Both the position numbers and the translations under genes were made by a program. Source: Cyanophora paradoxa CCMP329 (lineage: Eukaryota; Plantae; Glaucophyta). From it: DNA of 64,000 nt. Numbering within the stretch: position 1 is the first letter of the stretch; each line of letters begins with the position of its first letter. Positions 19,901 through 60,569 of this stretch are shown piece after piece. The notes beneath the pieces are model-generated. The model did not search any database and was not told the origin of the DNA. It saw only the letters and a list, made by a program, of their open reading frames with translations. The stretch is taken from assembly GCA_004431415.1 (NCBI GenBank), contig QPMI01000093.1, positions 186,001-250,000 on the forward strand, given 5' to 3'.

Positions 19901-22313
19901 GCGGCGGAGCGCGCGGGGCGGCGCCTCCACGAGGGGCGCGAGGCGGCGGCGGGCGCCGCCGCCGCGCGCCGGCGGGCGGCGGAGGTGAAGGGCCGCGCGA
20001 ACGTGTACGCGGCGGAGGCGGCGCGGGGCGAGAGGGCGGCGCGCGAGGCGGAGCGGAAGCTGGCGGCGGCGGAGGCCTCGCTCCAGACGGCCGCGGCGGC
20101 CGCCTCGGCGCTCAAAGAGGTCGAGGAGGCGTTCGGGCGGGGGGGCGTACAGGTCCGCTAACTCCAAGTCGATTTAGCTCACTTAATAACGAACTTGCTC
20201 ATAAATGACTAAATCAAGCTAAGTTAACTATAGCTTACTAAACGATCAAGCTAATTCACGACTGGCTTACTGAACCGACTAACTTTAGTTAACTATAGCT
20301 AGCTAACTAACTAAAGAACTTGCTCATAGTTGATTGACTCAAGCTAAGTTCACCATAGCTAACTAAACGGACGAACTGATAGTGAATTAACTCGCCTGGG
20401 CGGCGTCCATGCCAGGTCCGCCAAGATAACTATAGCTAACTAACCGAAGAACTTGCTCATAGTTGATTGACTCAAGCCAAGTTAACCATAGCTAACCAAA
20501 CGAACGAACTGATAGCGAATCAACTCGACTGACTTTGAGCGTCGCAGGGGTACGTGCTGGAGGCGGCGCTGCAGGACCTGGAGGGGCGGGCGGGGGAGTA
20601 CCTGCACGCCCTCTCCGCCGGCGCCCTCCGCATGGAGATCAGGTCTGCTCGTTATATATACATCTTTCCTTCTCTTTCTTGAGTTAAGCTATGCAAATGT
20701 CCGCCGAGCTATAGCTAAAGTGAAGCAGCTTCAGTGTCTAAAGCGCTAAAGTGAAGTTAAAGTGAAGTTAGTGAAGCTAAAGTGAAGCAGCTTATAATTT
20801 ATTAAGTCTCTATCTAGCTAGAAGGCCCAGGCCCACGCCCTTCGGGTTTCTTTCTCTCTGCGCTTTCTGACGCGTGGACGGCAGCCCCGTGCGGGAGAAG
20901 AAGGCGGGGGGCACGTCGGAGAAGATCACCAAGCGCCTCCTCGCCAGGTCCGGGTCCGGAAATCACTCGGAAAATTTAAAATTTGAACAGAAACTTTAAG
21001 AGGCGCGGGCGGGCCCGGGCCGGGGGGTGGGCCCGGGCCCCCGGCCGACGCTCAAGGGGACCCGGACCACCCGAATCGGATTCCGACTTGAGCTGCTAAA
21101 TTTAAACTCTGCTATGGAAATGTAAATCTAATCTGATCCCGGCTCGCGCTGCTAAATTTAGACTTCGTTCGCCTTAAGCTTCGTTCGCAGGCGGGCGGAC
21201 GGGAGCCTGGCGGAGCGGGCGCTGCGGCAGCTGAGCGGGGGCCAGTGGCGGCGGCAGGGCCTCGCCCTGGCCCTCGCCTTCGCCGACTTCTGCCAGCAGC
21301 GCACCGGCATCAGGTCCAACCTCATCGTCCTCGACGAGGTCCGCGTCTCGTTTGTGTTTATAAGTAGCTCTTATTTAGTTCCACTAGGTCTAGGTTCTTT
21401 ATTTATTTAGTTTGTAGTTCTAGGTTCTTAAATAGTTCGAACCACATCGTCCTTAACGAGGCGCGGGCATTTCGTTCTTAAGATTTTCTTTGGCTCCTCT
21501 AGGTTCTAGGGTGTAGGGACAAGACCCGGCCAGACCTAGGCCCCCCCCCCCCACCCCCCCAACACACACACACCCACCCCTCCCCCGCTCCACCCCCCTC
21601 CCCCCCCCCCCCCCCCTGGCCACGAAGCCTCTCGGGCCCAGGCTCACAGGCTCAGACCCCGGCCAGGCTCAGACCCCGGCCTTCAAATCCAGAAACCGGC
21701 CCCTCCTCCCAGACCCAGATCTAGACCTAGGCCGCCCGGACATTGGCCCCCCTACCCCTCCCCGCCTCCCTCACCTGATTCTCTTCTCCCTCCCGCCCCC
21801 CCTCCCTCCTCCCAGACCCCGACCTAGGCCGCCCCGTCCTCCACACACCCCCTCACCTGATCCTCTTCTTCCCCCCACTCCCCCTCCCCCCCGCCCCGCA
21901 GGTGCTGCAGTCGCTGGACGCGGAGGGGCGGCAGCGGGTGGCCGGCGTCGTCCGCTCCCTCCCCTACGACTCCATCCTTGTCGTCTCCCACGAGGTGCCC
22001 CAGGCTTCTTTATATAAGCTTAGCTTCGGCTTAGGAGAGGTTCTGATTACAATTAGCCGAGTCCAAATAAGCCCGTCTCTAATTAGCCCGTCTCTAATTA
22101 GAGGTGTAAGCTTATTAGCTTGTAGTTAGCTTCCACTCCCTCCCCTACGACTCCCAGGGGGTTCTGATCTGATCTGATCTGATCTGATCTGAGCCGATCT
22201 GAGCCGATCTGACCTGATCTGAGCAGGTGGACTTCGCGCCGTTCGACCGCGTGGACCGCGTCCTGCGGAGCGGCGACCGATCCTCCGTCACTCTCAACGC
22301 CGGCCACCGCTGA
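13993..22313 (+). CDS. Fused SbcD/Mre11 metallophosphoesterase + SbcC/Rad50 SMC-like ATPase, multi-exon, with N-terminal extension
   Basis: Nuclease motifs FSDLH, LFLGDWWH, IPGNHDQ, FCH, TGHYHKPH, YVGSPYQ. ATPase: VELEGYGPF, Walker A SNGSGKSTL, coiled coil with zinc hook CERCLQPV, signature LSGGQWRR, Walker B IVLDE, ILVVSH; stop TGA 22311-22313. Confidence 0.88.
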
Positions 22314-22806: not shown

Positions 22807-22971
22807 AAGCTTTCCATATATACGTATATATAGGCTTTCCATATATACGTATATATAAGCTTTCCATATATACGTATATATAAGCTTTCCATATATACGT
22901 ATATATAAGCTTTCCATATATACGTATATATAAGCTTTCCATATATACGTATATATAAGCTTTCCATATAT
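22807..22971. repeat. 25-bp tandem repeat aagctttccatatatacgtatatat, about 6.6 copies
   Basis: Direct reading; the unit contains the perfect palindrome ATATATACGTATATAT plus AAGCTT. Confidence 0.92.
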
Positions 22972-23000
22972 ACCGCGGCCGCGGCCGATCGCGGCCGGCC

Positions 23001-35688: not shown

Positions 35689-36769
35689 GGACCCCGCGGC
35701 GGCCCTCGCATTAGATCTATTCCGCTTTCCTGTGCCTGCAGCTGCATATGCATGCATACGCATGATATGTGCAGCCTTGCACTGCGGCAGCAGCAACTGC
35801 CGCAGTACGTTCGTGGTACCGGATGATTCGCTAGCGCTCTTAAATAGTGAGTTAGCTTATCCTAGCTATATAGCCGCTGAGCTGTACATATATAGTCGCT
35901 GAGTCATTTAAAGCAGAATACTAATATTAGCATATAATCATGCATATGAGTACTAGTTATGCATATGCATGCATGCGCACTGCGGCATATGTGCATATGG
36001 GTTGAGCTCCGCCGGCGGCGCGCGGGTACGCATGCTAGCGCTAGCCGCTGAGCTGGCCCCTTGGGCTCATGATCAACGGCTTGGTATATATATATCATAG
36101 TATCGAGCGCGGCCCGCGATATATCGATCTGCCGCTGGCCCGGCCCGCGGCCGGAGCTCGAGGCTCGTGATGAGCCTCCGGAGATCCGCTGATCATGAGC
36201 CGGCCCGGTCCGGCGGATCATGCATATGTTCCCGCCGATTAATATTCGTGCATATGCAATGATTTCCCGGAGTCGACGTCCCGCCGGGCCGTCTACGCTT
36301 CAGGACTTGCGAAGTTCGCTAGCTGTCACAGTGTATAGACATGTACAGTCGGACTGTGCACGTGGAGGACTCGGGAGGGTGCAAGGCGATCGTGAAGGAC
36401 ATGGAGCACGCGTGCAATAGCAGCCCGCCGGGCCGGAGTACGTACGTAACGTGGGGAACATGTACAGCGCATGCACATGGGGAGGCCTAGGGGAAAGACG
36501 CCGGCGCGCCGGTCGGCCCTGGGGCGCCAGCAATCGAGTTCAAGCGCGTATTAATTTGTGACATTGCCATTGGATTCAATGATTGCGACATAGAACAGAG
36601 AGATTATTTCAATTGCAATGTGAAGGCTTCTCTCCTATGTAGCGCGCTACGGCAGCTGAAGGCCCGTCGCACGGGCCGCAACTTGCAGAAAGCGACAAGA
36701 CTCTGAGATAGGCCATAGCTAGCTCGTCGAATAATTAAAAATATTTCTCGAGCTTAGCTAGCTATAGAT

Positions 36770-37713
36770 CTAGTGCGCCGCGCGCCATCTAGCAGTCCGC
36801 GAACTCGATCTCGAACGCCGCCTCGGGGCCTCGTCCAGGCTGTCGAACTGCGCGCGATCGAAGGCCACGTCAAAATTCGAAATGGAGCGGAATATATTTC
36901 ATTTAGCACGCGGAACCCGGCGCGCGGGGCCTCGGGCCTCGATTTCCGAAAGTTCGCACCTCGATGTCGGCCTCGAGCATGGCGATCGATATCTCCTCGT
37001 CGAGCTGCGCGATGTCCTTGTACTCGGTCCCGTTGAGGGCCTGGGCCGTCGAGTCCACGACCTGCCAACCCGTACGCGTTTAGTTCACGCTAGCGCTTGT
37101 GACTACCGCTCGAACTTCTAAAGCAAAGCGAAAACGAATGGGCGCAGCGCACCGAGGCGAGGGAAACGTCCTTGTTGGAAATGCACCCGCAGTCGTAGGT
37201 GGACAGGGCGACCGCCACCTGCGCGTACGGGGTAAAATAAGTTCGGGCTGCATGTGGGTCGGGCCCGCGGCTCCGCCGCGCGCGCGCGCCTTGTTGTAGG
37301 CGATGTCGATCTCGACGGGGTGGTGCTTGGCGGCGTCGCAGTCGTCGGCAAGGTCGCCGGCAAAGTCCAGCGCGTGGCGGAAGTCCTCGAACTTGAACGT
37401 CTGCACGCGATTCGTACATATTAGTACTCGCAGAGTTTGCGCGGCATGCGCAGCGACGAAGTGCATCGCAAACGTGTTCACACCTTCACGATCTGCTGCA
37501 GCGAGGTGCTGCCATTGGAGATGGTCTCGACGCGCCAGCCGGGCAGGGTGGACGAGCCGATCTCGGCGACCTGGCCGCTGGAGAGAGCGGTGAAGGTCGG
37601 GCTGCACAGACCGCGAGCATAAGCGAGGTGCGCGCGCGAGGGCAATTGCAAGGTCGTGCATACCCGCCGTCCGCGACGGAGTTCACGAGGTCAACGAGAG
37701 CGTCCGACGACAT
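36770..37713 (-). CDS. Pterin-4-alpha-carbinolamine dehydratase (PCD/PhhB)-like, copy 1; last exon frameshifted by one missing base relative to copy 2
   Basis: LPGWRV...IVK|TFKFEDFRHALDFAGDLADDCDAAKHHPVEIDIAYNK|VAVALSTYDCGCISNKDVSLA. Confidence 0.85.
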
Positions 37714-38307
37714 GGCGGCGAGAAGCTTAAGGACTTGGCCGAGAGAGCGTGCGTTAGCTCGAACTGGTCGAACTTGGCAGATGCGAGTGAGCGGCCACGG
37801 ATGACGAGGCCTGCAGGCTGCAGGCTAGGGCGACAGGTACCCCGCCAACGCGCTGAGCGGTTCGGACCAAACGCTCCTAAGAGTTTACCCGAGCTGCCTA
37901 GGAGTCTAGTAGGAGGCTAGGCCATCATGATCATGCCATGAGGGCCCGATGAGGCCCATGACTCAGTGACTCAGTTAATCCCATGATGCGCAGGCACTCA
38001 GTGACTTCCTGCAGAATTCATGTTCAATTGCAATTGCAAGGTCCTGTGAAATTTGTTCGGAAAGGCCGGGAAAGCTGTGACATTGCCATTGGATTCAATG
38101 ATTGCGACATAGAACAGAGAGATTATTTCAATTGCAATGTGAAGGCTTCTCTCCTATGTAGCGCGCTACGGCAGCTGAAGGCCCGTCGCACGGGCCGCAA
38201 CTTGCAGAAAGCGACAAGACTCTGAGATAGGCCATAGCTAGCTCGTCGAATAATTAAAAATATTTCTCGAGCTTAGCTAGCTATAGATCTAGTGCGCCGC
38301 GCGCCAT

Positions 38308-39233
38308 CTAGCAGTCCGCGAACTCGATCTCGAACGCCGCCTCGGGGGCCTCGTCCAGGCTGTCGAACTGCGCGCGATCGAAGGCCACGTCAAAATTCGA
38401 AATGGAGCGGAATATATTTCATTTAGCACGCGGAACCCGGCGCGCGGGGGCCTCGGGCCTCGATTTCCGAAAGTTCGCACCTCGATGTCGGCCTCGAGCA
38501 TGGCGATCGATATCTCCTCGTCGAGCTGCGCGATGTCCTTGTACTCGGTCCCGTTGAGGGCCTGGGCCGTCGAGTCCACGACCTGCCAACCCGTACGCGT
38601 TTAGTTCACGCTAGCGCTTGTGACTACCGCTCGAACTTCTAAAGCAAAGCGAAAACGAATGGGCGCAGCGCACCGAGGCGAGGGAAACGTCCTTGTTGGA
38701 AATGCACCCGCAGTCGTAGGTGGACAGGGCGACCGCCACCTGCGCGTACGGGTAAAATAAGTTCGGGCTGCATGTGGGTCGGGCCCGCGGCTCCGCCGCG
38801 CGCGCGCGCCTTGTTGTAGGCGATGTCGATCTCGACGGGGTGGTGCTTGGCGGCGTCGCAGTCGTCGGCAAGGTCGCCGGCAAAGTCCAGCGCGTGGCGG
38901 AAGTCCTCGAACTTGAACGTCTGCACGCGATTCGTACATATTAGTACTCGCAGAGTTTGCGCGGCATGCGCAGCGACGAAGTGCATCGCAAACGTGTTCA
39001 CACCTTCACGATCTGCTGCAGCGAGGTGCTGCCATTGGAGATGGTCTCGACGCGCCAGCCGGGCAGGGTGGACGAGCCGATCTCGGCGACCTGGCCGCTG
39101 GAGAGAGCGGTGAAGGTCGGGCTGCACAGACCGCGAGCATAAGCGAGGTGCGCGCGCGAGGGCAATTGCAAGGTCGTGCATACCCGCCGTCCGCGACGGA
39201 GTTCACGAGGTCAACGAGAGCGTCCGACGACAT
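38308..39233 (-). CDS. Pterin-4-alpha-carbinolamine dehydratase (PCD/PhhB)-like, copy 2, with an acidic C-terminal extension
   Basis: Same exons as copy 1; ends FDSLDEAPEAAFEIEFADC*. Confidence 0.87.
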
Positions 39234-40915
39234 GGCGGCGAGAAGCTTAAGGACTTGGCCGAGAGAGCGTGCGTTAGCTCGAACTGGTCGAACTTGGCAG
39301 ATGCGAGTGAGCGGCCACGGATGACGAGGCCTGCAGGCTGCAGGCTAGGGCGACAGGTACCCCGCCAACGCGCTGAGCGGTTCGGACCAAACGCTCCTAA
39401 GAGTTTACCCGAGCTGCCTAGGAGTCTAGTAGGAGGCTAGGCCATCATGATCATGCCATGAGGGCCCGATGAGGCCCATGACTCAGTGACTCAGTTAATC
39501 CCATGATGCGCAGGCACTCAGTGACTTCCTGCAGAATTCATGTTCAATTGCAATTGCAAGGTCCTGTGAAATTTGTTCGGAAAGGCCGGGAAAGCCTTGA
39601 AGCTACCGAGTTCAGGATCTCTGTTCGGATTGCAACTTGCAAAGTTCGTTGTTCGGAAACACTTAAGCTTCGGATCGTACTTTCAAAGTTAGCACTACCG
39701 AAATTCAGGCTCAGCGGCTACTAATAGGCTAGTAGTAGCCTGCTAGGCTAGTAGCCGAGAGTCCCGAGACACAGTCCGAGAGTTCCGAAGTTCGGTCCTT
39801 CGGTCCTGGCTTCGGATCGTACTTTGCAGAAGTTTGCACTACCGACTCGGCGAATTGAGGCTCAGCGGCTACTAATAGGCTAGTAATAGCCTAGTATACG
39901 TAGTAGCCTGCTAGGCTACCGGGGGTAGTAGCCGAGACTGCTGCCGAGTACTACGCCGTAGTAGTACTAGTACGCCGTGACGGTATACCGGTAGACTCTG
40001 AGACTTAATAGACCCGCGGCCCTCAAGTTGCACAACCGTCACGGCGTTGAACTACTAATTATAATTATATGAATGCACTGCGGCACCACCGTCCGACGGT
40101 CCACTGCCCAGTGCCCACTACTAATGGGCCACTAGTACTCCCCTGGTCTGCCAGTAGACTGCCACAGTCTGCCCACGTGCACAAAGTCCACAGACTGCCA
40201 GGCCAGCGCTGCCCACTGGGCCACCGTGGCTGCGGGCCTGCGGCGTGGCCCGGGCACTGCTGGCCCAGTAGCTGGCACTGACTGGCACTGACTGGCAGTG
40301 ACTGCCCACTGGCATGCACCACTGCGCCGAGCTCGAGGGTCTTAGCGACTCTTAGGCTGTCCGACCGTCGGACGGTCGGGCTACTAGTAGTCTTAGCCTC
40401 TTAGGACTCTTAGCACATTGCGCATGATCACGATCGAACTCGGAAGACTCTCGGAGTCGGAACTTTGACTCGGAAGTTAGACTCGGAAGTTGCCAAGTTG
40501 AGAGTCGGAACGCCGGCCCCGGCGGCCCGGCCGGGCCTTCCGCAGGAAAATTAATTAATAAATCATAATTATAATTAAATCGTAGCGCCGCGGCGCGCGC
40601 GCCGACTCGGCGATCGCGACTCTATACTATGATAAGTTCTCACTGTACTACGGTAGCGGTCGTGCCGCCGAGTCATATATATATCATATATAGTATATCA
40701 CTGTATATGCTACCGTAGTACGCCGCCTACGCGCGTACTACGGCCGCGGTATACGACCGCGCCGCGTATACGTATACGTACCGTAGTACGGTACTACGGT
40801 ACGCGCGTGCGCCTTAAGCTTGTCGCCTACTTACTACGCAGCCTAAGCTGCGGCCGGCTACAGCTAGTCGCCTTGATCGCCGAATCGACGTCAAGTCGTC
40901 GTCAACTCATTAATT

Positions 40916-42940
40916 ATGCGCAGCTGCGCAGGCTATAGCTACGTATGCGACCAGACGTACAATGTCACATATGCATGTAGTTCCCTGCAGTTGGTAGCTA
41001 GCACTGCAGCCGCAGCCAGAGCGCAACTGCAGACCCCACAAGTAGTGCGCCCAGACTCGCTCTCTACGCTCTCCAGTGCGGACGAGGTGCGCGTGCGCGT
41101 GCTGCAGCGCTAGCTCATGATCACGTCACGATGTGTGGTCGAGCTCGAGCCCGCATGCGTCTCACGCAGGTTGAGGAGTTGGGACGCACCGTTTATGGAG
41201 AATGGCCTCTCGCTTCCGGCGTAACTCTGCTGACTGCACTCTGGAAGGCGAGTCCTCGTGTCATCCCTGCAGCTTGAAACTTATATTTGTCATATATCAT
41301 ATGTATCTGAATATACATCGAACGTATACTTTACACTTCGCAGACGAACGCGTCGGACCCGAGGAGCTTCGGTGCCGACTATGTTACGATCCGCGGTTCG
41401 GCGATGGGAACTCTTTTGCCTCCATCCGATCATGGTATGCACGTTTGCGTGCATCGCGAAATGTGCTCGTGTGCACACTTGGGCAACTCTCGGCCACTTG
41501 CAACTGGCCTCGCCCCGAATATATGACTGCGACTGCGACGTTCATATGCATTTTCCCATCGCCCCAGATTTCTTTGTGCTTAATTCGATGCGAGCCTTCT
41601 CGGACGCTATTATTATGAGCGGTGCACAGTTGAGGTTCGCGCTCTCCCTTACAAGCTTAAGGGTAATAAAAAACATCTCTCGTCTAAAGCCAAGTGCTCA
41701 GAATGGACACTTGGATTGATTTCGCACTGCAAGGGCGAGCAGCTCGGGGCCTGCTAGAGTGGCGCACACAGCGGCTGCAGAAGACCCGCCCGCAGTGCAT
41801 CATGGTCTTGTCCCGAGGCGAGGTCTGCCCAATGATTCACTGAGTTTCAAAAATCGATTCCGTGAAAACGATTCCAGATGAGATCTAACCACGTGCACGC
41901 CATGCGCATGCGCATGTCCTGATCCGCGGTACTGCAGGATCCCGAATTAACTCTATCCCACCAAGTGTTCAGGCGAGAAGCTTGCAATTGATCTTAAATC
42001 ATTGAATGTCTGTCGGAATTATCATCTTACTTATTCTAGTTTCTGATTCAGCAAGCCATGCGATCGCCCTCTTTGCTTTCTCTTCTACACAGAGACGCGA
42101 AATGTAAAACGAGTGGAGGTTCGCTTTCATTTTCTGTCGCACGTTGATCTAGATCTGTTGTGATTTTACTCCGCGGTCAATCTCACAATGATGATCATGA
42201 GCGCAGAAAGTCGTGCACGACCGAGCGCTCGGCAACGTCCGCGTCGTCGGCGCGGAGCGCCCCTGCATCCGCTCCGCGGTCGACCTTTTAAAGACGGTGC
42301 GGACAATTTCATAACCTAAACCATAACCTCATAACCTTGAACCTCATAACAATTTCATAATTTATAACGTCAAGCTTAAGCTTGAACCGATATTACATAT
42401 ATACAAAGCCCTCCCCCCCGGCCCCTCGCAAACATGTGCGGCAGGAGGGCTACGGGGACATCGCAGTCGAGACGGGCCCGACAACGTCGCGGGAGCTGCT
42501 GTCCGCGGGCGGCTTCGACACGCTCCTCCTCTCCATATACGATTCGCCCTTCATAGATCCCGAGGTGCGTTCTAGATCTGTGATGCTTCAAAATCGCTAG
42601 TACTATGTACATGTGGAAGCCGGCTCGCGTCCCCACTTACGCGTGCTTAATATATATATAATAAACAACATGTGCCCAGGCCATCCACCCTTCTCTGGCA
42701 TTCGCGGATGAAAGCCACATCAGAACGTTCTTTGAGCCGAAATATTCGCTTACCGTCGCGCCCTCCACACCCGTCGGTGCGTCATATATTTCCAGAGATC
42801 TTAAGCACTAATGCTAGGTAGCAAGCACCCTCCAGACTTTTCTGATTTTCGGCACAGGGGCTCGGTGGCACATCCGCCGCTACCAACGCCGTGCTATGGG
42901 CTCAGGCTGGAATCTAGAGCTTCGCAACCAGCTTCTCTAG
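40916..42940 (+). CDS. RibD C-terminal / DHFR-fold NADPH-dependent reductase, multi-exon; start uncertain
   Basis: DFFVLNSMRAFSDAIIMSG (cf. LRA..DAILVG), MVLSRG, GYGDIAVETGPTTSRELLSAGGFDTLLLSIY (cf. ILVEGGPTL...L.AGLVDEL), terminal WHIRRYQR. Confidence 0.72.
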
Positions 42941-44381
42941 ATCTGGATTCAGATCTCGGCATTGACCTAGCCCTCACTTCGGGCCTCTGTGCCTTTCAGC
43001 GGCTAGTAAAGTGGTGCTCTGTAGTATATACAGCTAGAAGGTACTCCGAGGCTCTACGTATACGCTTGTTCGATACGCTTCCTATTGCCCGGCCGCTGCT
43101 TTTCGTGCACGTGCCGACTGGGCGGGCCTGGTGTACAATATATTTATAATATGATCATGACATGTGCACGTGGTGGGATCGGTGGGAGTTGCGCGCGGCG
43201 CGGAGCCGAACTTCGGGCCCGCAGGGGAGGCGGGGATGCGCGCAATGACCGGGAGAAGACCTACGGCCGCTGCTGCTTCAAATATATATTTATTCACGGC
43301 CGCCTCCGATCCGCCACGAATTCGAAGGCGCGCGTTCGTGCACCCGGCCGCCGCAATTCAAGCCGTACGCGTCTGCGCAAATTAAAGCCCGCCGCGCGGG
43401 GCGCGTCGCGATCGCCGAGAATCTTACTATCTATATATGGGCTTCAGATTCCGTCGACGTCTCATGCTGACTCCATTTGATTTCAGCTGGGCGGCGCTGA
43501 GGAACCTCTGAACCCCCTGCGTAATTGCAACGAAGCTTTGAGGGCCTCGCGGTCGGAGCTCATGATCATGAAGGGGCTGGAAGGCCGAGTCGCAGAGTGG
43601 CCTTCTAGCTTAAGGCCTTCGAATTCGAATTCCTCTCCCTCCTTGAGTGCTAGCGCTATCTAGGGTGCAACCGCTGGCGCTGAGCTGTGCCACGGTGCAC
43701 GTGCCACGGTGTTGCGCATGCAAGTGACGCGGGAGTGATCATGAAGAGTTCCGAAGTTCATGCACGTACGCGTGATCACGGCCGCCTCCGCCGCGAAGGC
43801 ACCCGGCCGCCGCGATTCAAGCCGTCCACCATGGGCAGGGGGCATGGGGCCGGCGCGGGCGCCCAGCGGCCGCGCGGCACGAGCATTTGCATGCCATTGA
43901 TAGTGCATAAATATTGGGAACACCTGCTGCTATCATAGTATTGCGCTCGGGAGTCCTGATTTGCCGAAGTTGGCCCAGCTGCAGTGGGATCTTTCGTTCA
44001 TACAAAATATTGCGTCATATCTAGATCTGGTCATAATTATAGCTTTCCAGATCTAGCTATAAAGTGGAAAACACGGGAAGTTCGAATTCGAAGTGTGAAA
44101 TTTAAACCGACTCTAGATCTGCTACTAGGCTAGGCTGGGCGACTAGGTCTACTAGTACTGGGTCTAGCTATGTAACGCTAGCTATCAGTATAGCGTAGCC
44201 AACTCATTGTTCGTCGAATAATTATCAAAGCATGCGGATCGCGGATCGTCGGACCTAGGCCGGGAGAGCTCGAGGTCCGACCGTCGGACGGTCCGGATCG
44301 CGGCGGCCAACTGGCAAGGATACTGCCCCTGGCGGCCTAAGCATGTGTCCTGCGCTGCGCAAACCGGCTGGCCGGCTAGGC

Positions 44382-45677
44382 CTAGGAGCGGACGGCGGCG
44401 AGGAATTCGCCGCGGAGGACGCTGTCGTCCTTGAAGGAGCCCAGCGTGACCGTCGTGACCGTGGACGCGCCGGTCTTTTGCACGCCCCGCATCACCATGC
44501 ACATGTGCCTGCGCGCGGCGCCGGCCGGTCGGCTTAGCTTGCGCTGCCGCTCCGGCCCAGGGGATCCCCCGGACGGGGGACGGGGTGCGAGGCGGGCGAA
44601 TTCGAAGGAGCGCACGTCGCCTCGACCATGACGGCGACGCCCTTCGGCTGGAGGACCTCCTGCACCGCCTCCGCGATCTGCTTCGTCAGGCGCTCCTGCA
44701 CCTGTGCGTGTGGCAAGGGGCGCGCGTCATGGGAGGCGCGCCGCGGCACGCTCTTCATCGGACCTGGAGCCTCCGCGCGAACATGTTGGCGATGCGCGCG
44801 AGTTTGGAGAGCCCAATCACGCGCCCGTTGGGCACGTAGGCGATGTGGACCTTCCCGTAGAAAGGAACCATGTGGTGCTGCGCGGCGCGGACGGCCGGTC
44901 ATGAGCAGCCCAGCCAACGAGGCTCGGCGCTCGCGCAGCATCCCTCGGCACCTCGCACAAGCTGAAGATGTCGATGTTCATCACGAGCACCATCTCATCC
45001 GCGCTCTCCTCGAAGATAGCGTTGTTCACAAGATCTGGCACGCAGAGTATACGTAGTGAAATAAGAGATCTAGATCGAAATCTGAATCTTGAACACCGGA
45101 CGCTTACGGATGTCGAAAGAATTTTAAGCTTAAGAATTTTTAATTGCAATCAAATCCAGACTCCTTTTGCAAAATTGAGATCCCGTCGCGCGCACCACTG
45201 ACGCTTTCCCGGTAGCCCGAGGTTAGGAACGAGAGCGACTCGGCGACTCGGTGCGGCGTCCTTCGCAGGCCTGCGATCGCGTCTAAGCGAATCAATATCT
45301 GTATGTGGCGAAGCGCGACGGCGCTATATGCATCCATATATATACATACATAGCTATAGCTAGCCCTCTGAAATCGATTTCGGGCGCGCACCTTCGCGCT
45401 CGACGTCCTCGCCGAGGGCTGTGAGCACGCTCGAAATGGAGCTTGCTATTGATGCTTTGTCGGGCTTCAAATACCGATCCCGCGGAGACATCGATATCTC
45501 GTGGGGCTTGACGGCGTCGTGGCTGGAGTTCGGCGCGGGGACGACGTCGGCGGGAGGGGCGGGCGCTGCGTGGTAATGCGGATGGGAGAAGACTGCGTCG
45601 TTCGAGTGCGCCTGCACCGACGTCGACAGTGCCGCCAGACCTAAAGTCACTACGAGAAGAGCAACCCTGAAATTCAT
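44382..45677 (-). CDS. GCH1: GTP cyclohydrolase I (FolE/GCH1) with a signal-peptide-like N-terminus, multi-exon
   Basis: [33 protein letters not shown]|[70 protein letters not shown]; the Zn ligands in CEHH and HMC are present. Confidence 0.96.
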
Positions 45678-45850
45678 CAACGCACAACGCGCGGGCTAGC
45701 GCTGCAGCTGCCAGGCCTAGGGTGGGCGGCCGCGGAGGGCGCTAACTGTGCTATACGTACATATACTGGTAATGTAGTATGACACGCGTACCGCGGCGTA
45801 CGTGAACGTATATGAACAGGTGCCACGGTGTTCCGTAAACGTTGACGTCC

Positions 45851-50260: not shown

Positions 50261-50415
50261 TGTCCGGACCTTTCCAATACTCTATATGATTATTGGGAGG
50301 GTCCGGACACGTCTCTTGGTCAGACTACTTCTGTCCCAGGTCTTTGGAATCTTAATATAAATTTTCCCGGGACCCGGGACAGGGCTTGGTCGGACTCACC
50401 GTAGCTTGGTGTAGC

Positions 50416-53400
50416 TCAGGCCCAGGCCGGGTAGGCGAGTCTGTAATGAATCAGACCGCGCAGGATTTGGTTGAGCTGCTCGGTGCAGGGGGGCGGGAAG
50501 GCGAGGCCGCGGAGGGCCATAGAGACGTAGCGGAAGGGGTGGGGGAGGCGGCCCCTGTTATCCCACATGGCGTCCACTATGGCGTTGTGGACCACTTGCT
50601 CTGGGAGGGCGGGACGGGCCTGCGCGCACCGTTTCAGGGCCCTCAGCAGCCCTCGAAGATGTTGGAGTTGGCGTGCACCAGCGGGAGGGAGGGCTGGGAC
50701 GGCGGCGGCGAGCCCGGGGCCGAGCCCTGGGTGGCGAGGGCCTGCGAGGGCGCCGGCTCCAGCTCCATCTCGAACATACCGCCCTCGACGTCGACGGTCA
50801 CGGGCGGCGAGGCCGGGATCGCGCCGGCCTGCTGCGTGGCGGGGACCTGAGCCGAGAAGTTCTCGAGCCGCCACTCGCGGCAGCCCTGGCACTCACCTGG
50901 ACGAAGACGGTGCGGTTGGCGACGGGCGGCGTCGGCAGGGCCTGCGCGGGGGCGTCACTCACAGAAGCCGAAGGCGCCGGCCTTGTGGGGCGGGGCGTCG
51001 GGGTCGCGGGGCGTGCTATAGGCCTCCGAGCCCTCCGATTCAGAGTCACTCACCGGGCTGAGAGGGTGGGGTGAGAAGAGGCCGAGGCGGGCCTTCTTGG
51101 CGGGCAGGAGGTGGGAGCCGTTGAGGGCGCAATCGGCGCCGTGGGCGCACCTCTCTCCGTAGGTGGGGCAGAGGGCCGGGGGCGAGGGCGCCGGAGCCAA
51201 GGGCGCCGGAGCCGAGGACGCCGGGGGCTGGAGGAGGCGGTGAGAGGGGCCGAGGAGGAGAGGAAGGGGGAAGGGCGCGGGCACCGGCGCCGGGACGAGG
51301 CCCTCCTCCAGCAGCCGCATCTGCGCCTCCTTCGCCTTCTCGTCGATGCGGGCCTCGAACGTCGCCCAGTTGAAGCCGACGGCGTCCGCCTCCGCCAGCT
51401 CGGGGAGGCCGTGCTCGTCGAACGCCAGCGCGGGCCGCCCGCTGAAGCCGAACGGGGCGGGGGGCGAGAGCGCGTTGTCCCCGACGCCCCAGACGGCGCT
51501 GAACGCCGCATCGTCCCAGCGCGCCTCCGCCTCCGCCTGGCCCTCGTCCCTTGCCTCGTCCACCTCCTTGGCGGAGAGCGACCCGATCTTGATGATGGAG
51601 GCCTGGATCAGCACAAACTCGCGCTGGAAGAATTGGACGAGCGGGATGGTAACTGCGGGAGAGGGGGTGAGCGGGGAGAGCGCGGGGCGCAGGCCAAGGG
51701 CGGGGGCGCAGGCCAAGGGCGGGGCGGACGCACATTCGATGCCGTAGGCCACCTCCTTGATGTAGCGGCCCCGGCGGCCGATCTCCTTGGCCAGCATGCT
51801 GCACTCCTTGCGCGCCGGGTGGCCGTGGCCCCACTCCATGGCGATCATCGCCTTCGCCAGACGGACGCCCTCGATGTGCCACTCGTCCATCAGCGCCTCC
51901 AGCTTGGCGCAGATGCGCATCCAGAAGAAGACGCGCTTGAGCTTGTCGCGGTCGAATTCGGCGTCGCCGCTCTTGCTGCCCCAGTCGCGCAGGTCCGTCT
52001 CCTCCGCCTTCTTCACCTTCTCGTACCAGCACTTGATCTTCTCCGCCTGGCGCTGGAACTCGTCCGCCCGCGCCGTGAGAACGTCCGACTCCTCCTGCGC
52101 TCCGAGGGCCCGGGGTCAGGGAGGAGAGGCGGGCTAAGCGGGGCGGCGGCGGACCGTGTGCGAGAGCTCGCCGACGATCACGGAGATGGCCGCCGAGAGG
52201 ATCTCACGGGCGCGGGCCGGCCCGTTTGGGTGGCCCTCGCGCAGAACCTCCTCCAGCTTCAGCACGGCCGTCCGCGCGAGATCGCGGTGGCGCTGGCGGG
52301 TCTCGTCGCTCCGGCCCTGATCCACGAGAAGCTGGAGCTGGGGCCGCATGCCGGAGTCGCAGACGCTGGCGTACTTCAGAAGGGCCGCGCAGGAGAGCAC
52401 CTTCTGCACGCTGACCAGCCAGTACGCGTAGCCCAGCGGGCTCTCCGCGCTCGGGTTCTCCCGACCTGCGGACGCGACCTTAGCGCGCGCAGGGGCAGGG
52501 GAAAGGGGAAAGGGCGGGCTCTCGCGCACGTAAATGTCATCGGCGCAGGAGAGGAACATGTGATCAACGACGTCGAAGAAGCCGCCGGACGGGAGCGTGC
52601 CGACGCCGTGGTACGCGCCTTGGATGGTCTCGCCGGCGCAGATGCCGGCCTGGACGGTGACGGTGTACTGCGAGGCCGGCGGCCCCTCCTTCACGTAGAC
52701 GAAGTTGAGGTCGTACTTCTTGGCGTACGTCGGGTTGATGCGCTTGGTGACGATGACGTAATCGCACCGAACGCCGAGGCCGGACGGGCTGGCCTTCTCC
52801 TTCTCCGTCACCGACGCCAGGCACTGATCCCGCGCGATCAAGAGCTGCAGCGGCCCGCGCGTGAGCAAGCGCGGGCACGCGAGCGCAGGGAAGGGCCCTC
52901 ACCCCGTGGGCGCCGCCGCTGCCGGATTTGAGGTCCGCGAGGAACTCCTTCTGCTCCGGAGTGCCGGAGAAGATCGCGCGCGGATGGAAATCGCGATGGA
53001 GCGCGATGCTGTTGAAGCAGCCCGCCGCCGCATTGTCGGACATCAGCAACAGCGCCACATCGCCGTGCGTGAAGCCGTACTTCGCCTTCACATGCTCCGG
53101 CAGCTCGTGAATGCTGTAAGGCACGATCTGCGCGCGGGGCACGCGAGCCGGGGCATGTGAGCCGGGGCCGAAGCGGTGCGGGCGAAACCGCGAACCTCGT
53201 TGAACTTATTCACCGGCGTGAACTGGCCCTTGGTCTTCAAGCGCTTCGGGTGGCCGTCCGTGTTCTGGATCTTCTTCAGCCCGCCGAACGGCTCGAAGCG
53301 CGGCACGCCGGCCGAGTTGAACACGCTATCGCAGGTCATCGCGTTGAGCGCCTCCTCCGCCGACAGGCTGCCGAGATCGCGGGCTATGCTGTCCTGCTCG

Positions 53401-53447
53401 CCGGGCTGCTGCTGCTTCGCGCACGAGCGGAAGGTCGCCGCCTGCAT
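50416..53447 (-). CDS. Large intron-containing hypothetical protein (viral element)
   Basis: Successive codon-biased exons (MQAATF.., IVPYSIHEL.., LLIARDQC.., KKAEETDLRDW..) separated by GT..CAG introns; no family recognised. Confidence 0.55.
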
Positions 53448-53749
53448 CGCGAGTGTTACTGCCCGCGATGTCTCAACGGATTCCGTTCAACGTCGTACCC
53501 CGCTGGCTTGTTCCCTCCCCAACTCGCGAAGACTCAGACTTGAAGCCCGCTTCCCCCCCCTCAAAATGCGTACCCCCTTGGGCTCGAACCCCGGTCGGTT
53601 TCTCGCTTTTTTTTGACTGCCCAGTCCGGCGATGCAATGCAGGCCGCTCGTTCAAATCGGCTGGGAACTTGGCGCCAGAACCTTCGCAGCGCGCGCAGCA
53701 CTCCCAGCAGAGCGCGCGCAGCACCGGCGGCAGCATCGGCGGCAGCAGC

Positions 53750-56700
53750 ATGTCTCGGCTCGCGCTCCCTCCGGAGATCCCGGCTAAGCTGGCGAAGAAC
53801 ACGCTGTACGACGTTCTCTGCGTCGGCGACAGCTTCGGCGTCGATTGGACGGTTTCGAGGCCGGCATCAGCGACCAGGCGAAGGAGGCGCAGGCGCGTGC
53901 GCTGGAGGATGGCATGCAGTTCAGCCCGAGCAGCAAGGATGTGCTGCGCAAGACCGAGCTGGCCGAGCGCAAGCGCAAGCTCGCCGCGGCGCGGACTTTG
54001 AACGCCGAGGGTGCCCCCGGCCCGTCGGTGCAGTTCTCCATCGACTCCGTCCTGTCGCGGCTGCGGCTCGCGGAGGTGCTCGCTGCCTCTTTCTCCCTCA
54101 CGCGCCCGGCTCGCAGCGGCTGAGGCGCCGCCGCGCTCGCAGGACGCGGACGTGCGGGCGATGCACGCGGCGCTGAACATGACGGAGGAGAACTTCGACA
54201 CGCCGAGCAAGCCGAAGCCCGGGCGCGATTCCGACGCCCGCCGGCTGTTCGCGGCGCAGCGCCTGCGGCTGCTCATGGGCGCCGTGCCCCGGCACATCGC
54301 CAAGGGCGAGTGGCGCACGATTGGCCTGCTGGCGGGCCCGGAGGAGTTCTACTTCAACCGCATGGCGGAGGCGGCCCCGCACCTGCTCTGGCTGCTGGTG
54401 CTCAGCTCGGACCCGGCCTACACGCCCGAGGTGCGCCCCGGCCGCCCGTGCAGCCGCGGCCGCCCCTCCCCGCCGACCCCCGCCGGCCCGCAGAGGCTGG
54501 CGAAGGGCATCATGGGCGTCGAGGCGCGCTGCATCATGCGGAACAGCCGCGCGTTCATCACGCGCCACGAGAGCTCGGCGGTCTGGGGCGAGCGGCCGGA
54601 CACCGGCGTCCTCACCGACGCCTACGCCATCCGCATCGTGCTGGAGGCGGCCTGCCGGACGTGCCGGGACCGCCACGGGCGCCAGGGCATCTGCGCCTTC
54701 GACCTGGTTCCTGAGTTCGAGGTGCCCGGCGTCACCATCGGCGACCGCGTGCAGGTGCGCCGTTTCTATTTGGATGCTATTTAGATGCTATTTAGACTAT
54801 TTAGATGCCATTTAAACCCCCTCGCAGGTCATCCGCCGGTGCTCGATGCCGGACTCGCACGGGCGGCCCATGATCCACGGCGCCGTGAAGTACGTGGTGC
54901 CGCGGCGCACCCTCGCCCTCACCTTCTTCGTCCCCGTCTTCGACAAGGCGGCCGCCGCCGCCGCCGCCGCCGCCTCCCGCCCCGCCCCATGCTCGCGGCC
55001 GCGGAGTCCTCGGATTCCGACTCGGATTCCGAGGCGGAGCGCGAGGCCGAGGCCGCCGCCGCGGCCCGGGCGCTGGACTTCACGGAGGAGGAGCTGGAGC
55101 GGGCGCGGAGCCTGCCGCGCGCCGGCCAGGCGATGGCCGCGGCCTTCCAGGCGGCGATCGGCGAGGCGACGGCCTCCGCCTCGGGCGCCCGGGCCGGCGG
55201 CAGCATGATCACGGCGGAGGGCCTCGCGCGCGCCATGCGCGTGGCCCAGGCCCAGGCCCAGGCGAAGGGCAAGGGCAAGGGCAAGGCCGCCTACATCGAC
55301 CTGCGGTTCGAGGAGGAGGAGGCGGGTGCCCCGGCGGCGCGGCGCGATCTCGGCGAGGAGATGGAGGCGGCGGCCCCCAAGGCGGCCGGTGCGCCCTCCC
55401 CGCCCCTAATTTCTGAGCCTAGGGCGTTCCAGAGGCGCAAAGGAATGACCCTGCCCACAGAGGAGGAGCTGGAGGCCGAGCGCGAGATGGAGATGGAGGC
55501 CGCGCTGGCGGCGGCGGCGGACGCGAAGGCCTCGCGCGAGCTGGAGGTGGCGGAGGAGTACGCGATGGAGCTGGAGCGCGAGCGCGAGCGCGAGGGCGAG
55601 CCCGATGCGGAGCTGGCGGCGACGGTGGAGGCGGGGGCGGGGGACACCTTCGAGCCCGAGCCCCCCGTCGACGAGTTCTACCCCCTCCCGCCCTCCCCCT
55701 CCCTCGACGGCGCCCCGCCGCCGCCCATCGAGGAGTTCTCGGACGACGAGCCCGGCGACGCCGGCCCCAGGCCGCCCCTCGTCTCCCCCGCCGCCCGCCC
55801 GCCCCCGTGCCCCCGCCAGCCCCGCCGCCTCCGACGTCTCCTGGCGCCCGAGCGGCAACCCCTCGGCCTTCAGTCCCTTCCGCCCCTCGCAGCCCTCGCA
55901 GCGCCCGCCGCCCTCCGTCCAGGGTACCCCCTCGCCCGCCCATCCCCTCGCCGCCGCGGGGCACGCCCGTCGCCACGCCCGCCTCCTCCCTCGGCCACAT
56001 GCCCCTCCGCCCCTCCGGCCCCCCGCGCCGGCCGCCTCTCCCGCCGGGCCCAGCAGCGGCGCGAGCGCGAGCGGCAGCTGCTGCGCGATCAGCGGGCGGA
56101 GGCGGAGGCGGACCACGACGACGGCCAGGCGTCGGAGAGCGACGGCGAGCCGCCGCGCGCCACCAGGCTGGAGCTGGCGCGGGCGGAGCTGGCGGTGCAG
56201 CCGCGCGAGGCGCCCGAGATCGACATGTCCAAGTACGACGACGTGACAACGTACAGCAAGGACAACAAGTCCAAGAAGGAGGCGGCCATTCAGGATGCGC
56301 TCCGCCTCTTCGTCAAGAACAACGTGCGCCCCGCCCCCTTAGCTGCGCGCCCCGCCCCCTTAGAGGCCGGAGGCGGCCGTGGCCCAGCTGCTTAAGGCGC
56401 TGGGCCCGAGCCGCCTTCGGCCGGTGCGCCCCCCTCCCCGCGTTCGAACCCCGCTAACCCCCTTTTGCCGGCGCAGCGGATCGTGCGCCAGAGACCCTAC
56501 GGCCCGAACTCCCCGCCCACCTTCTACGTCGAGCTCCCGAACCTCTTCGTGTACGACAAGGTCAGCGCGAACAGGCACGCCGGGCGCGGGACGATGAAGG
56601 AGGTCATCCAGCTGCTGGCGATGACCTTCCACAAGACCTACGAGTCCAACCCCGGCTCCTTCGAGTTCACCTTCTCGAAGGAGGTGCTCTCGGGGCGGAC

Positions 56701-58916
56701 GCGCACGTTCGTGGAGGAGTCCCTCCAGCTCGAGGACGTCTGCCCCGAGATGCCCGTCATCCCCGGCTTCGCCTTCGCCTGCGACACGCGTGCGCCGCCC
56801 GTACCCCTGCGCCCCGCCCCGTACCCCGCCGACGCCCCTTGCGCAGATTTCGTGGTGCGGGCGCCGCAGGACAGCACGGGCAGCGCCTGCGTCCTCGTCA
56901 TGACGCACGAGGAGGCACGGGAGCGGTACGCGGGCTACATGAACACCTGCTACATCCAGGGGCGCCTGCCCGCGGGCATCGAGGAGGCGACCGAGACCTG
57001 CGACTGGCCCACCGTGTACGGCATGCTGCACCCCTTCATGCCCAACGTCGTCAAGCACCTGGCGGACAACGGCTACGTGACGGCCGACGAGTTCGGCTAC
57101 GCGGCGGCCGTCCTCTACGCCTTCAACCTCGTCGGGCCGTGGAACTTCTGCGACAAGCCCGTCTTCGACCGGGAGCCGCGCGCGGAGATCGAGCCGCCGT
57201 CCGAGGGCGCCATGCTGCAGTACTGCGGCATCATCAAGGGCCAGTCGGGCACAGGCAAGTCGATGGTGACGCAGATCATGACGGAGTGCCTGCCGCCGGG
57301 CCGCGTCTGCGTCTACCGCCCCTCCAAGGGCTCGGCCTTCTCGGAGCACGGCGGCGAGGAGGCGATCTGCATGGTGATGGCGGAGGGCCTCGACCCTAAG
57401 GCCTGCTCGGAGGAGGAGCTCAAGATGCGCTCCGGCGACGCCTACTCCCGCAACTTCAAGAACGTCCGCGGCGACGATGTGCGCACCAAGGCGACGCGCA
57501 AGGTGCTTGTCATCGTCTGCAACAGCTTCCCGCAGGTGCGCCCGTTCCCCTGCCCCCTTCCCCTTCCCCGGCGCCCTTTCTCACTTGCCCCGGCGCAGCT
57601 CGAGAACCGCATGCTCGAGTTCTTCGCCCGCGTCGTCCTGATCCCCTCGACCACAAGCCGGCCAAGAAGCGCACCTACCTCCACTCCGACATCCGCGAGA
57701 ACGAGCTGCCGGCGCTCATGGTCGCGGCCTTCACCTTCGCGTGGAAGATCATCCACGCGCTCTCCGACGGCAAGGCCTCCTGCATCCAGGCCTTCGAGCC
57801 GGCGTGGCTGCGGGCGCAGCGCCTCGGCTTCTGGCAGGAGACGGCCTCCTGTCCCCTCACCCGCTTCATCATCGCCCACTGCGCCGTCGACCCCACCACC
57901 TACGTCGCCGCCCCGAACACGGAGGGCTACATGACGAGCGTCGCGGGCATCGTCGAGTACATCGCGCGCACGGAGGGCCCCGACACCTCCGCCGCCGTCG
58001 GCGCCGACATCGAGAACGGCCGGCTGGACGAGACCCTCGCCGGCTTCGGCTCCTGGTGCCGCCCCTACTCCTACAAGCTCGGCGGCGTCTGGCAGACCTA
58101 CATCCGCGGCATCGTCCCCAAGGCCCCGCTCTCCCTCGGCGAGAGCCAGCCGGCGCTGGAGGCGATCGCGATCCCCGTCGCCCAGTTCAAGGACCCGGCG
58201 CCCGACGTCGGGCCCTTCCTCGTCAAGCCCCACACCAAGGGCAAGGGCAAGCGCACCCGCAACTCGGCGCCGGCCTTCCTCCCGCCCCAGCCCCCGCCAC
58301 GGCCCCCAGCAGCGCCCCGGCCAGCAGCGCATCGACGAGATGCTGCCGCGCCAGGTCCGGCCCCGCGTACCCCCGCCTTCCCTCCCGTACCCCCCTCCCC
58401 CGCCCCCTCCTGATCCAAGGGCAGGGTACCCCGACGAACGGCGGCGCGGGCCCGAGCGGCTACGGGAGCTCGGCCTCCTCCGCGAGCGCCGACGGCCCCA
58501 GCCCCCTCCCCGGCCCCGGCGCCGTCCTCACCGCGATCCAGGGCTTCGGGGCCCAGCAGGAGGCCGAGCGGCGGGCGCTGGCGGCGCGCCAGGCGCGCGA
58601 GGCGGAGGAGCGGCGCCAGGCCCTCTGGGCCCAGCGCCTGCAGGCCACCATCGCCTTCCGCGCCGAGCTGGACTCCGGCTTCCGCGCCGGCCAGATCGCC
58701 GGGGCGGAGGCCTCGGAGCGCTGGCGGGCGTTCGAGGCGGAGTCGGCGGGGCTGGCGAAGGGCCTCGGCTACAGCTACCGGCGCGTGCCCGTGCTCAAGG
58801 ACTACGCGTCGGCCGCGGCGCGGGAGGCCTCGCGGGCGGAGATCGACGCGGCGGAGGAGCAGGCGGCGCGCGAGGAGGCCGAGGACAACGCGCGCTTCCG
58901 GCACCTGCACCACTGA
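53750..58916 (+). CDS. Large intron-containing protein with a D5/P4-type superfamily 3 helicase domain (~56480-57760)
   Basis: Walker A IIKGQSGTGKS (57239-57262), variant Walker B CMVMAE, GDAYSRNFK, sensor-1 LVIVCN, FARVVLIP. The N-terminal half is unrecognised and may be a separate gene. Confidence 0.72.
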
Positions 58917-58965
58917 GGCCCCGAGGCGGTATTTTTTCTCAACCCTCCCTCAATTCGGTCCCGCG

Positions 58966-59154
58966 ATGGCCTTCGAAGCTTATCCTGCCCACTACTCGCT
59001 AGGAGCGCTGGCCGCGACCCTCACCTGGCTCCTCGGCGGCACCCCCACGGCCTCGGCGGTCATAGGCGTGGGCTTCGGCTACGCCGCCAAGTCCCTCTAC
59101 GCCCCCGGCGGCGCCTCGCAGGCGGCGGCCGGCATGCGCCCCGCCGGGCGCTAA
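58966..59154 (+). CDS. Small hydrophobic protein (62 aa)
   Basis: ATG with upstream TTTTTTCTCA; two hydrophobic segments. Confidence 0.55.
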   Translation: MAFEAYPAHYSLGALAATLTWLLGGTPTASAVIGVGFGYAAKSLYAPGGASQAAAGMRPAGR

Positions 59155-59249
59155 CTTTTCAAAGTTCATTCTCCCCTCCCCCTTTTCCGAGTTCCGAGTC
59201 CGTTGGCGTTCCCTTTTAAATTTTCTTCATTCTCGTTACACGTTCGAAG

Positions 59250-59729
59250 ATGTCGAGCGCGGTAGAGAAGCTGCTGTGCACCGTGTTCAAATCGGATTCG
59301 CGATGCAGCAAGATCGGCGAGGCGGCGAGGGCTAAGGGCGGGGCGGCGGCGGAGGGGCCCAGGGTGAAGGCGGCGGATCCCGCGCCGCCGTCGCTGAAAA
59401 CGATCAAGGGGGCGGGCAAGGGCAGGAGCGTGGGGGCGCTGCCCCTCGTGGCGATCGCGCCGGGGCAGAGGGAGGCGGCGCACGCGGCGACGGCGGCGCT
59501 GGCCGCGCGGCGGCAGGCGGAGGCCTACCCGTGCCTGGGCCGGGGGCTGCACCCGCCGGCCGGCCGCCCCTACGCCGTGAGCGCCTACTTCGACGAGGCC
59601 AACCGGCTGAGCTGCCAGGAGCTGTGCGACAACCGCATGCGGCGCGCCGTGGACGGGCACCTGCCGCTGCTGGTGGCGCTGGGCGGCTCGCTCCTGATGG
59701 TCTGGTACCTGCGCGGCCTGGTCATTTAG
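59250..59729 (+). CDS. Hypothetical protein with C-terminal TM helix and four Cys
   Basis: Ends LPLLVALGGSLLMVWYLRGLVI*. Confidence 0.65.
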   Translation: MSSAVEKLLCTVFKSDSRCSKIGEAARAKGGAAAEGPRVKAADPAPPSLKTIKGAGKGRSVGALPLVAIAPGQREAAHAATAALAARRQAEAYPCLGRGLHPPAGRPYAVSAYFDEANRLSCQELCDNRMRRAVDGHLPLLVALGGSLLMVWYLRGLVI

Positions 59730-59755
59730 ATAGTTTTTCGAAGTCTAGGTCAAAG

Positions 59756-60157: not shown

Positions 60158-60169
60158 AGCGAGCGAACC

Positions 60170-60542
60170 ATGCGCGGCGGCTCTTCCCCCGTGTTTCCTT
60201 CGCTGAGAACCCGGTGGCGAACGCAGTCGCCCCTACCCCCTGGAGCCCGGAGTGAAGCTGGAGCGTGCGAACGCAGTCTCCGTCAAGAAGGCCAAGCGCA
60301 CGCTGGCGCTGGAAGTCCCGGTCGCGGAGGATACGGAGAAGGTTGCATTCAACAAGCGCAAGACGTACAAGGCGATACGCGAGGGACAGCTGCTGCCCAC
60401 GGACTCGGTTCCCGGGCTGCCGGGCACCACGGCCGGCGAGCTCCTAGTGCGCAACCTGCGCCTGCAGTACGTCTCCCGCCTCCGCCGCTCCAAGGCCAAG
60501 AAGGCGCGCCTGGACTCGGGCGATAGCAGCTCTAGCTCGTAG
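60170..60542 (+). CDS. Small basic protein (probable indel in the C run near 60238)
   Basis: K/R-rich frame KLERANAVSVKKAKR...RLRRSKAKKARLD; ATG 60170 with upstream ATTTTCTAAA. Confidence 0.5.
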
Positions 60543-60569
60543 GGCTCTGTACTGTTGTATTCAATGCCT

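Follow-up and report, generated by a model that had tools for sequence, protein, structure and literature searches.

Two PCD genes, a RibD/Rib7-type reductase-like gene absent from the public annotation and a GTP cyclohydrolase I gene are nuclear neighbors in Cyanophora paradoxa

Three families of cofactor-enzyme genes stand side by side

The 64,000-nucleotide stretch of DNA analyzed here (the window) is part of contig tig00000382 of the glaucophyte alga Cyanophora paradoxa, as seen from exon translations that equal proteins in EukProt. Within this stretch lies a real neighborhood of three cofactor-enzyme genes of the nuclear genome: pterin-4a-carbinolamine dehydratase (PCD), present as two copies, a RibD/Rib7-type reductase-like gene that is absent from the public annotation, and GTP cyclohydrolase I (GCH1), in the order PCD, PCD, RibD-like, GCH1 and with the orientations -, -, +, -. 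We favor, at a probability of roughly 0.55, the reading that all three are ordinary cofactor enzymes, in two cases as extra copies, which sit together without demonstrated joint regulation, and that the reductase is most likely of the riboflavin type. An earlier sequence-only reading of the same DNA had proposed a co-regulated pterin cluster with a RibD_C-type dihydropterin reductase. The gene identities and their consecutive order, now established by Pfam matches, identity to EukProt proteins, RNA contigs and a custom profile, bear out the descriptive part of that proposal, as does the base composition; its functional part is a conjecture that runs into a number of mild objections, among them unlinked paralogs, mixed strands and riboflavin-type motifs in the reductase.

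The window consists of GC-rich, intron-rich, eukaryotic DNA, in which the interval of 36-50 kb is less rich in GC (0.50-0.60) than its flanks (0.67-0.75), as had been remarked from the letters alone. It comes from a long-read assembly of 712 contigs with an N50 of 214 kb and 25,831 BRAKER genes, in which the average gene has 9.2 introns of 86 bp and genes stand 770 bp apart on average (PMC6704402), compared with gaps of 1.1-1.6 kb between the genes described here. The statement that no other gene is recognizable between them also stands, given that the public gene numbers g24583-g24585 are consecutive, with no public model between g24584 and g24585, and that the gaps are empty of RNA contigs (none fell on 40000-40581 or 42910-43879). 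The supplements of the assembly paper contain no entries for the PCD, RibD-like or GCH1 genes (PMC6704402), and a search of the Cyanophora literature for GTP cyclohydrolase, phenylalanine hydroxylase and tetrahydrobiopterin found nothing relevant, the one paper that surfaced being on GTP cyclohydrolase II.

The features are listed here by window position, with UTR for untranslated region.

36557 to 38075, no strand: tandem repeat unit 1, 1519 bp, containing PCD copy 1
38076 to 39595, no strand: tandem repeat unit 2, 1520 bp, containing PCD copy 2
36789 to 37713, minus strand: PCD copy 1 (g24583 = P0001, 165 amino acids), six exons; Pfam Pterin_4a, E 4.8e-19
37713-37663, 37600-37484, 37400-37290, 37218-37150, 37058-36960 and a last exon ending at ~36789, minus strand: exons of PCD copy 1, from located exon peptides
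38308 to 39233, minus strand: PCD copy 2 (g24584 = P0006, 168 amino acids), six exons, one GC-AG intron
39234 to 40915, no strand: region between the divergent PCD copy 2 and RibD-like gene, with short repeats and the RibD-like 5' UTR
40916 to 42940, plus strand: coding sequence of the RibD/Rib7-type reductase-like gene, absent from the public annotation; 11 exons, 339 codons and a stop
40916-41086, 41170-41247, 41344-41434, 41568-41634, 41702-41822 and 41938-41972, plus strand: RibD-like exons 1-6, from RNA contigs, frame and splice sites
42052-42118, 42207-42296, 42445-42564, 42680-42776 and 42858-42940, plus strand: RibD-like exons 7-11, from RNA contigs, frame and splice sites
42445 to 42564, plus strand: RibD-like exon 9, '..IAVETGPT..LL..G..D.L.L.I', corresponding to E. 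coli RibD residues 296-321
45677 to 44382, minus strand: GTP cyclohydrolase I (g24585 = P0007), six exons, 255 amino acids
45677-45392, 45270-45199, 45034-44952, 44877-44764, 44701-44616 and 44508-44382, minus strand: GCH1 exons, from RNA-contig junctions and the minus-strand reading

A transcribed gene for a RibD/Rib7-type reductase

RNA contigs were aligned to positions 40000-45800 of the window (5,801 letters), with contig depth serving as a rough guide to expression only. Spliced RNA contigs, which derive from runs of four studies, skip nine of the ten RibD-like introns, and the tenth (41823-41937) was placed by inference. Eight introns are GT-AG and two GC-AG, and their ends set the plus strand; the GC-AG introns, at 41248-41343 and 41973-42051, are both present in RNA contigs. 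The frame is open from the first ATG at 40916 to the stop at 42940, and in DNA of such GC content 339 codons are very unlikely to stay open by chance. Since one RNA contig runs unbroken over 41880-41967, there is also an early-stopping isoform of the gene, which keeps 41880-41937. The 5' UTR begins at about 40763-40803, where the loose end (30 letters) of one RNA contig at 40763 found no match inside the window and was disregarded. Inspection by eye of the predicted product shows a Ser/Thr/Ala-rich extension of about 57 residues at its N-terminus; it has no deaminase domain and would be a stand-alone reductase. GC content at third codon positions is 0.45-0.87 along the gene, compared with 0.73-1.0 in GCH1, and is low for the Cyanophora genome. 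The public Cyanophora annotation thus gains a new, RNA-supported gene model.

All evidence for homology to RibD was gathered exon by exon, with single exons as queries. Pfam, run over all RibD-like exons, placed RibD_C (PF01872) on exon 9 only, with an E-value of 0.06 and a score of 13.3-13.5 bits against a gathering score of 24.1, for a single exon scored. A tblastn comparison of E. coli RibD with exon 9 aligned residues 296-321 at 50% identity (E 0.009), and the chain of exons is colinear with the E. coli RibD reductase domain at z = 4.4 over shuffled exons. We also built a hidden Markov model from 13 RibD/Rib7 reductase domains, comprising that of E. coli and those of plasmid-borne genes of bacteria and a haloarchaeon. 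Model positions 52-64 are matched by exon 4, positions 72-78 by exon 6 and positions 159-185 by exon 9, again in colinear order; the real score was reached by 2/2000 shuffles for exon 4, by 29/2000 for exon 6 and by 0/2000 for exon 9, whose score is 10.4 bits. Compared with the references one by one, exon 4 aligns to the 'RA.sDAilvG' motif in nine of the 13, and exon 6 aligns to 'DPxLT' in nine as well. Language-model features (Atlas) of exon 9 returned RibD_C as all ten of the best named clusters, at a score of 0.83 that serves as a lead only, and exon 5 gave no usable match there.

Other parts of the family signature are altered. The N-terminal A-S-L-D-G motif is not kept, the two candidates for it, 'TVYG' (exon 2) and 'AMGT' (exon 3), both failing, and the 40-residue exon 5 separates 'DAilvG' from 'DPxLT', which lie about nine residues apart in the references. 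Further searches added no relatives: NCBIfam gave no match for the eight RibD-like exons searched, PDB sequence searches with exons 5, 8 and 9 returned nothing useful, and prokaryotic genomes scanned with the exon 9 stretch yielded no confirmed relative. A word-indexed protein search with the 161-residue stop-free stretch around exon 4 found no match, probably because the length filter of that search excludes proteins of ~339 residues and because the gene is unannotated. A profile search of 1.84 billion proteins with exon 9 brought up only repeat proteins (beta-propeller and Ig-like), which we set aside as matches of composition or repeats rather than relatives. On sequence grounds, the product is very probably a stand-alone homolog of the RibD/Rib7-type reductases. 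Its best alignment is with riboflavin-type RibD/Rib7 motifs, and it is the position of the gene alone that suggests pterin chemistry.

A recent tandem pair of PCD genes

The two PCD genes of the window form a recent tandem pair. The units that contain them are arranged head to tail and differ by zero substitutions and three 1-base indels, every one of which lies in a run of G. The coding sequences start with ATGs at 37713 (copy 1) and 39233 (copy 2), and the exons translate exactly to the EukProt proteins tig00000382_g24583 (P0001) and g24584 (P0006); one intron, after the codons for ...AYNK, is of the GC-AG type. Because the G-run at 36821-36824 is one base shorter in copy 1, the frame of its last exon is shifted relative to copy 2, and the C-terminus of g24583 is consequently unlike that of g24584 and that of the paralog P0002; this end of the public model (36789-36847) needs correction.

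Assignment to the family is firm. Pterin_4a (PF01329) matches P0001 at 68.7 bits and P0002 at 66.9 bits, above the Pfam gathering cut-off of 26, and the best relatives among solved structures are human and rat PCD/DCoH, at E-values of about 1e-10. A scan of metagenomes with PCD confirmed no relatives. The third gene, P0002 (tig00020563_g11301), is 84% identical and lies on another contig, tig00020563, so that the evidence from sequence points to three PCD genes in Cyanophora.

The active-site residues are ones that we take to be the equivalents of His61, His62 and His79 of rat DCoH. The His-His-Pro (HHP) element is kept in the Cyanophora proteins, and the third active-site histidine is replaced by tyrosine in all three of them, which read STYDC where 3hxa and 1dch read STHEC. 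The substitution is encoded at 37150-37218 and 38671-38739 in the window and is found likewise in P0002. Either His or Trp is tolerated at this third position in active PCDs.

Whether the window holds two PCD genes or one bears on how the locus is described. If the exact 2.0-copy tandem were an assembly artifact of the long-read contig, there would be a single gene here, and the complete lack of substitutions over 1.5 kb, the presence of exactly two units and the restriction of all differences to three single-base changes in G-run length, the usual residual error of long reads, are what such an artifact would leave. We nonetheless consider it unlikely. PacBio reads far exceed the 1.5-kb unit and should span and resolve it, both genes are present in the public annotation of the same assembly, and its authors report that 34.7 Mb of previously missed duplicated DNA was resolved by the long reads (PMC6704402).

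A full-length GCH1 gene and its paralog

The public model of GCH1, g24585, has 122 residues and begins inside exon 3, its sequence being that of window exons 3-6; our reading extends it to 255 residues. The full N-terminus is supported because exons 1-2 are colinear with a 245-residue full-length paralog, P0035 (tig00000147_g9451), and because exact RNA contigs span exon 1 and the 5' UTR. The transcript extends to at least 45768 in the 5' UTR and to about 44032 in the 3' UTR. Pfam GTP_cyclohydroI (PF01227) matches P0035 at 251 bits (E 5.7e-75), above its gathering score, and single window exons at E 4.5e-9; P0007 and P0035 fall into one 90%-identity cluster. The zinc-ligand motifs ..CEHH.. and ..HMC.. 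are intact in the window copy (exons 3/4 and 6).

The deepest RNA contigs over the gene (depth about 20) mismatch the window at several bases per exon and encode ..KDIDLFSLC.. at exon 3, which is the P0035 version, indicating that these contigs derive from the unlinked paralog. Exact RNA contigs for the window copy occur at the 3' UTR and the first exon only, at a depth of 2-9. The sequences thus give evidence of two GCH1 genes in Cyanophora. As the genome is probably haploid (PMC6704402), the second copies of GCH1 and PCD are best taken as paralogs rather than alleles; separate copies of both, a point that the sequence-only reading had raised, therefore exist (tig00000147_g9451 and tig00020563_g11301).

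Viewed by eye, both Cyanophora GCH1 paralogs start in the manner of a signal peptide, with a short charged start, some 14 hydrophobic residues, the sequence ..SVQA and then a His (window 45677-45392, which is exon 1, and P0035 residues 1-60). This leader is followed by a stretch rich in His and by an N-S-S sequon that is conserved. Cyanobacterial relatives align to GCH1 from about residue 40-70 onward only. A secretory-type leader, if the resemblance holds, would be unexpected on this enzyme.

Do the linked genes form a unit?

Family knowledge predicts what the three enzymes would do: GCH1 would convert GTP to 7,8-dihydroneopterin triphosphate, PCD would dehydrate 4a-hydroxytetrahydropterins to quinonoid dihydropterins, and the reductase would most likely act on the ribosylamino-pyrimidine intermediate of riboflavin synthesis. 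Reduction of that intermediate is, to our knowledge, the sole established reaction of the RibD/Rib7 reductase family. Two of the adjacent families, GCH1 and PCD, are accordingly pterin enzymes. In the reading we prefer, the linked genes have neither a common origin nor a demonstrated common regulation, and duplicated copies of PCD and GCH1 would have come to adjoin a riboflavin-type reductase gene by chance or through weak local selection.

The linkage is not repeated elsewhere in the genome: the PCD paralog lies on tig00020563 and the GCH1 paralog on tig00000147, with gene numbers (g11301 and g9451) about 1,850 apart. Further points against a unit are that the deeper RNA contigs come from the unlinked GCH1 copy, that the strands are mixed, and that the spacers exceed the genome mean. 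A comparison of the regions upstream of the PCD, RibD-like and GCH1 genes yielded only short dispersed repeats as common motifs and no evidence of co-regulation. The N-termini, judged by eye, also differ, being signal-peptide-like in GCH1, Ser/Thr/Ala-rich in the RibD-like protein and neither of these in PCD.

Several observations pull the other way. The SLDG motif of the reductase is unrecognizable, the 40-residue exon 5 lies between the two N-terminal motifs and the best exon attains just 13.5 Pfam bits, while the low third-position GC content of the gene would fit a diverged paralog with a new substrate. Furthermore, the odds of finding GCH1 and PCD, both pterin-enzyme families, within two genes of each other are about 6e-4 (2 GCH1 loci x 2 PCD loci x 4 positions / 25,831 genes; PMC6704402). 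By our estimate, a genome-wide scan that accepted any neighbors from the same pathway would be expected to produce tens of pairs by chance.

An alternative reading is a functional pterin module. In such a module GCH1 would supply dihydroneopterin triphosphate, the duplicated PCD would recycle 4a-carbinolamine pterins and the diverged RibD-like protein would serve as an NADPH-dependent reductase of dihydropterins or quinonoid pterins, with co-regulation keeping the genes together. True pterin genes do flank the reductase on its two sides and nothing else intervenes, transcription of PCD copy 2 and of the reductase gene diverges from a common 1.5-kb region, PCD has been amplified locally, and the reductase is atypical for RibD in both motifs and codon usage. 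The wider DHFR superfamily moreover contains a precedent for pterin reduction in DmrA, a dihydromethanopterin reductase related to DHFR (PMC6193120), although DmrA belongs to the classical DHFR family and we rejected it as a precedent for RibD_C. Set against these points are the unlinked state of the PCD and GCH1 paralogs, the riboflavin-type RibD character of the motifs that the reductase retains, and the differing N-termini, which by eye suggest different compartments. On this balance we regard the module as improbable, and the specific assignment of the RibD-like protein as a pterin reductase as rather doubtful. The most elaborate version, a dedicated Cyanophora module in which a RibD-fold, NADPH-dependent dihydropterin reductase would replace QDPR or PTR1, its neighbors being a GCH1 paralog with a secretory-type signal peptide and an amplified PCD of the His-to-Tyr form, is less likely still.

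A common origin for the linkage is far harder to sustain. The three genes might have arrived jointly as a bacterial or cyanobacterial operon moved to the nucleus, and GCH1 taken by itself would agree with such a history, being 65-68% identical to cyanobacterial FolE, with its best 80 prokaryotic relatives in tblastn all cyanobacterial (51-67% identity). None of those 80 folE loci (880 kb in all) encodes PCD or a RibD reductase at a distance of up to 6 kb, and the closest solved relatives of PCD are animal enzymes; joint transfer is for these reasons unlikely. All three genes are in addition intron-rich and differently oriented, and no close relative emerged from the scan of prokaryotic genomes with exon 9 or from that of metagenomes with PCD. 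We accord this origin only a very slight chance, and return to the view of ordinary enzymes, brought together by chance or weak local selection, as the best account of the locus.

Spacers and the surrounding window

The region between PCD copy 2 and the RibD-like gene contains a 40-nucleotide repeat pair, at 39702 and 39853. A palindromic GTCCGACCGTCGGACGGTC-like motif occurs at 40083-40101 and 40359-40381 in the same spacer and at 44275-44296 in the GCH1 3' UTR, and may be a dispersed short repeat.

Beyond the three families, the block at 50400-64000 has a GC content of 0.67-0.75 and long open reading frames with few introns and no Pfam match; one of these frames (56426-57652, plus strand) carries a P-loop with a weak AAA_22 match. 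The genes of the block may be specific to the lineage, or the block may be a mobile or viral element that has integrated. On the other side of the locus, a 25-bp tandem repeat of 6.7 copies with 98% matches lies at 22807-22973. Two ordinary neighboring genes were also noted: an exon at 21186-21350 (plus strand) with a SbcC/RAD50-like Walker B motif (LSGGQ..., E 0.005), and an open reading frame at 6141-7079 (minus strand) that ends in a Fra10Ac1 domain (E 7e-7).

Significance of the locus

The finding is real but modest, consisting of known families, one new gene model and a cluster put forward as a hypothesis. Its firm gains are the model of the reductase gene, a corrected full-length GCH1 model and evidence for two GCH1 and three PCD genes in Cyanophora, to which two oddities may be added, the tyrosine in the PCD active site and the signal-peptide-like N-terminus of GCH1. 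Were the linkage functional, it would constitute a cluster of cofactor genes such as is rare among eukaryotes, and would offer, for an algal lineage that branched early, a candidate for the reduction of pterins with a fold so far known for riboflavin synthesis. The most elaborate version of the module, with its secretory-type GCH1, would amount to a compartmentalized pterin pathway such as is not known from algae.

Comparison with known systems

The animal tetrahydrobiopterin system (GCH1, and PCBD1/PCD with QDPR) has the GCH1 and PCD families in common with Cyanophora. Its genes are unlinked and its reductase, QDPR, is a short-chain dehydrogenase (SDR), whereas the neighbor in Cyanophora is a protein of the RibD_C fold; animal PCD has the third active-site histidine where Cyanophora PCD has tyrosine, and Cyanophora GCH1 differs in its signal-peptide-like N-terminus. 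With RibD of bacteria, Rib7 of fungi and archaea and PyrR of plants, the Cyanophora reductase has three colinear motifs in common (RA.sDAilvG, DPxLT and VE.GP...L...G.vD.l.l), and it resembles Rib7 in standing alone without a deaminase domain. Unlike all of these, it lacks a recognizable SLDG motif and has a 40-residue exon between the first two motifs.

Among prokaryotes, the bacterial phh operon (phhA-phhB) is like the Cyanophora locus in keeping pterin genes together, but there PCD (PhhB) is linked to phenylalanine hydroxylase and not to GCH1. Cyanobacterial folE neighborhoods, with 0/80 having a PCD or RibD neighbor, are unlike the Cyanophora arrangement. On a cyanobacterial-type metagenome contig (L002, 7156-8648) we observed folE directly downstream of an SDR gene, a juxtaposition that may pair folE with a pteridine or sepiapterin reductase.

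The GAL and DAL clusters of yeast and the nitrate-assimilation clusters of algae consist of adjacent, non-homologous genes that are co-regulated and conserved across species. The Cyanophora locus departs from them in that its paralogous copies are unlinked, and it resembles them in that non-homologous genes of a plausibly shared pathway lie next to one another in a nuclear genome.

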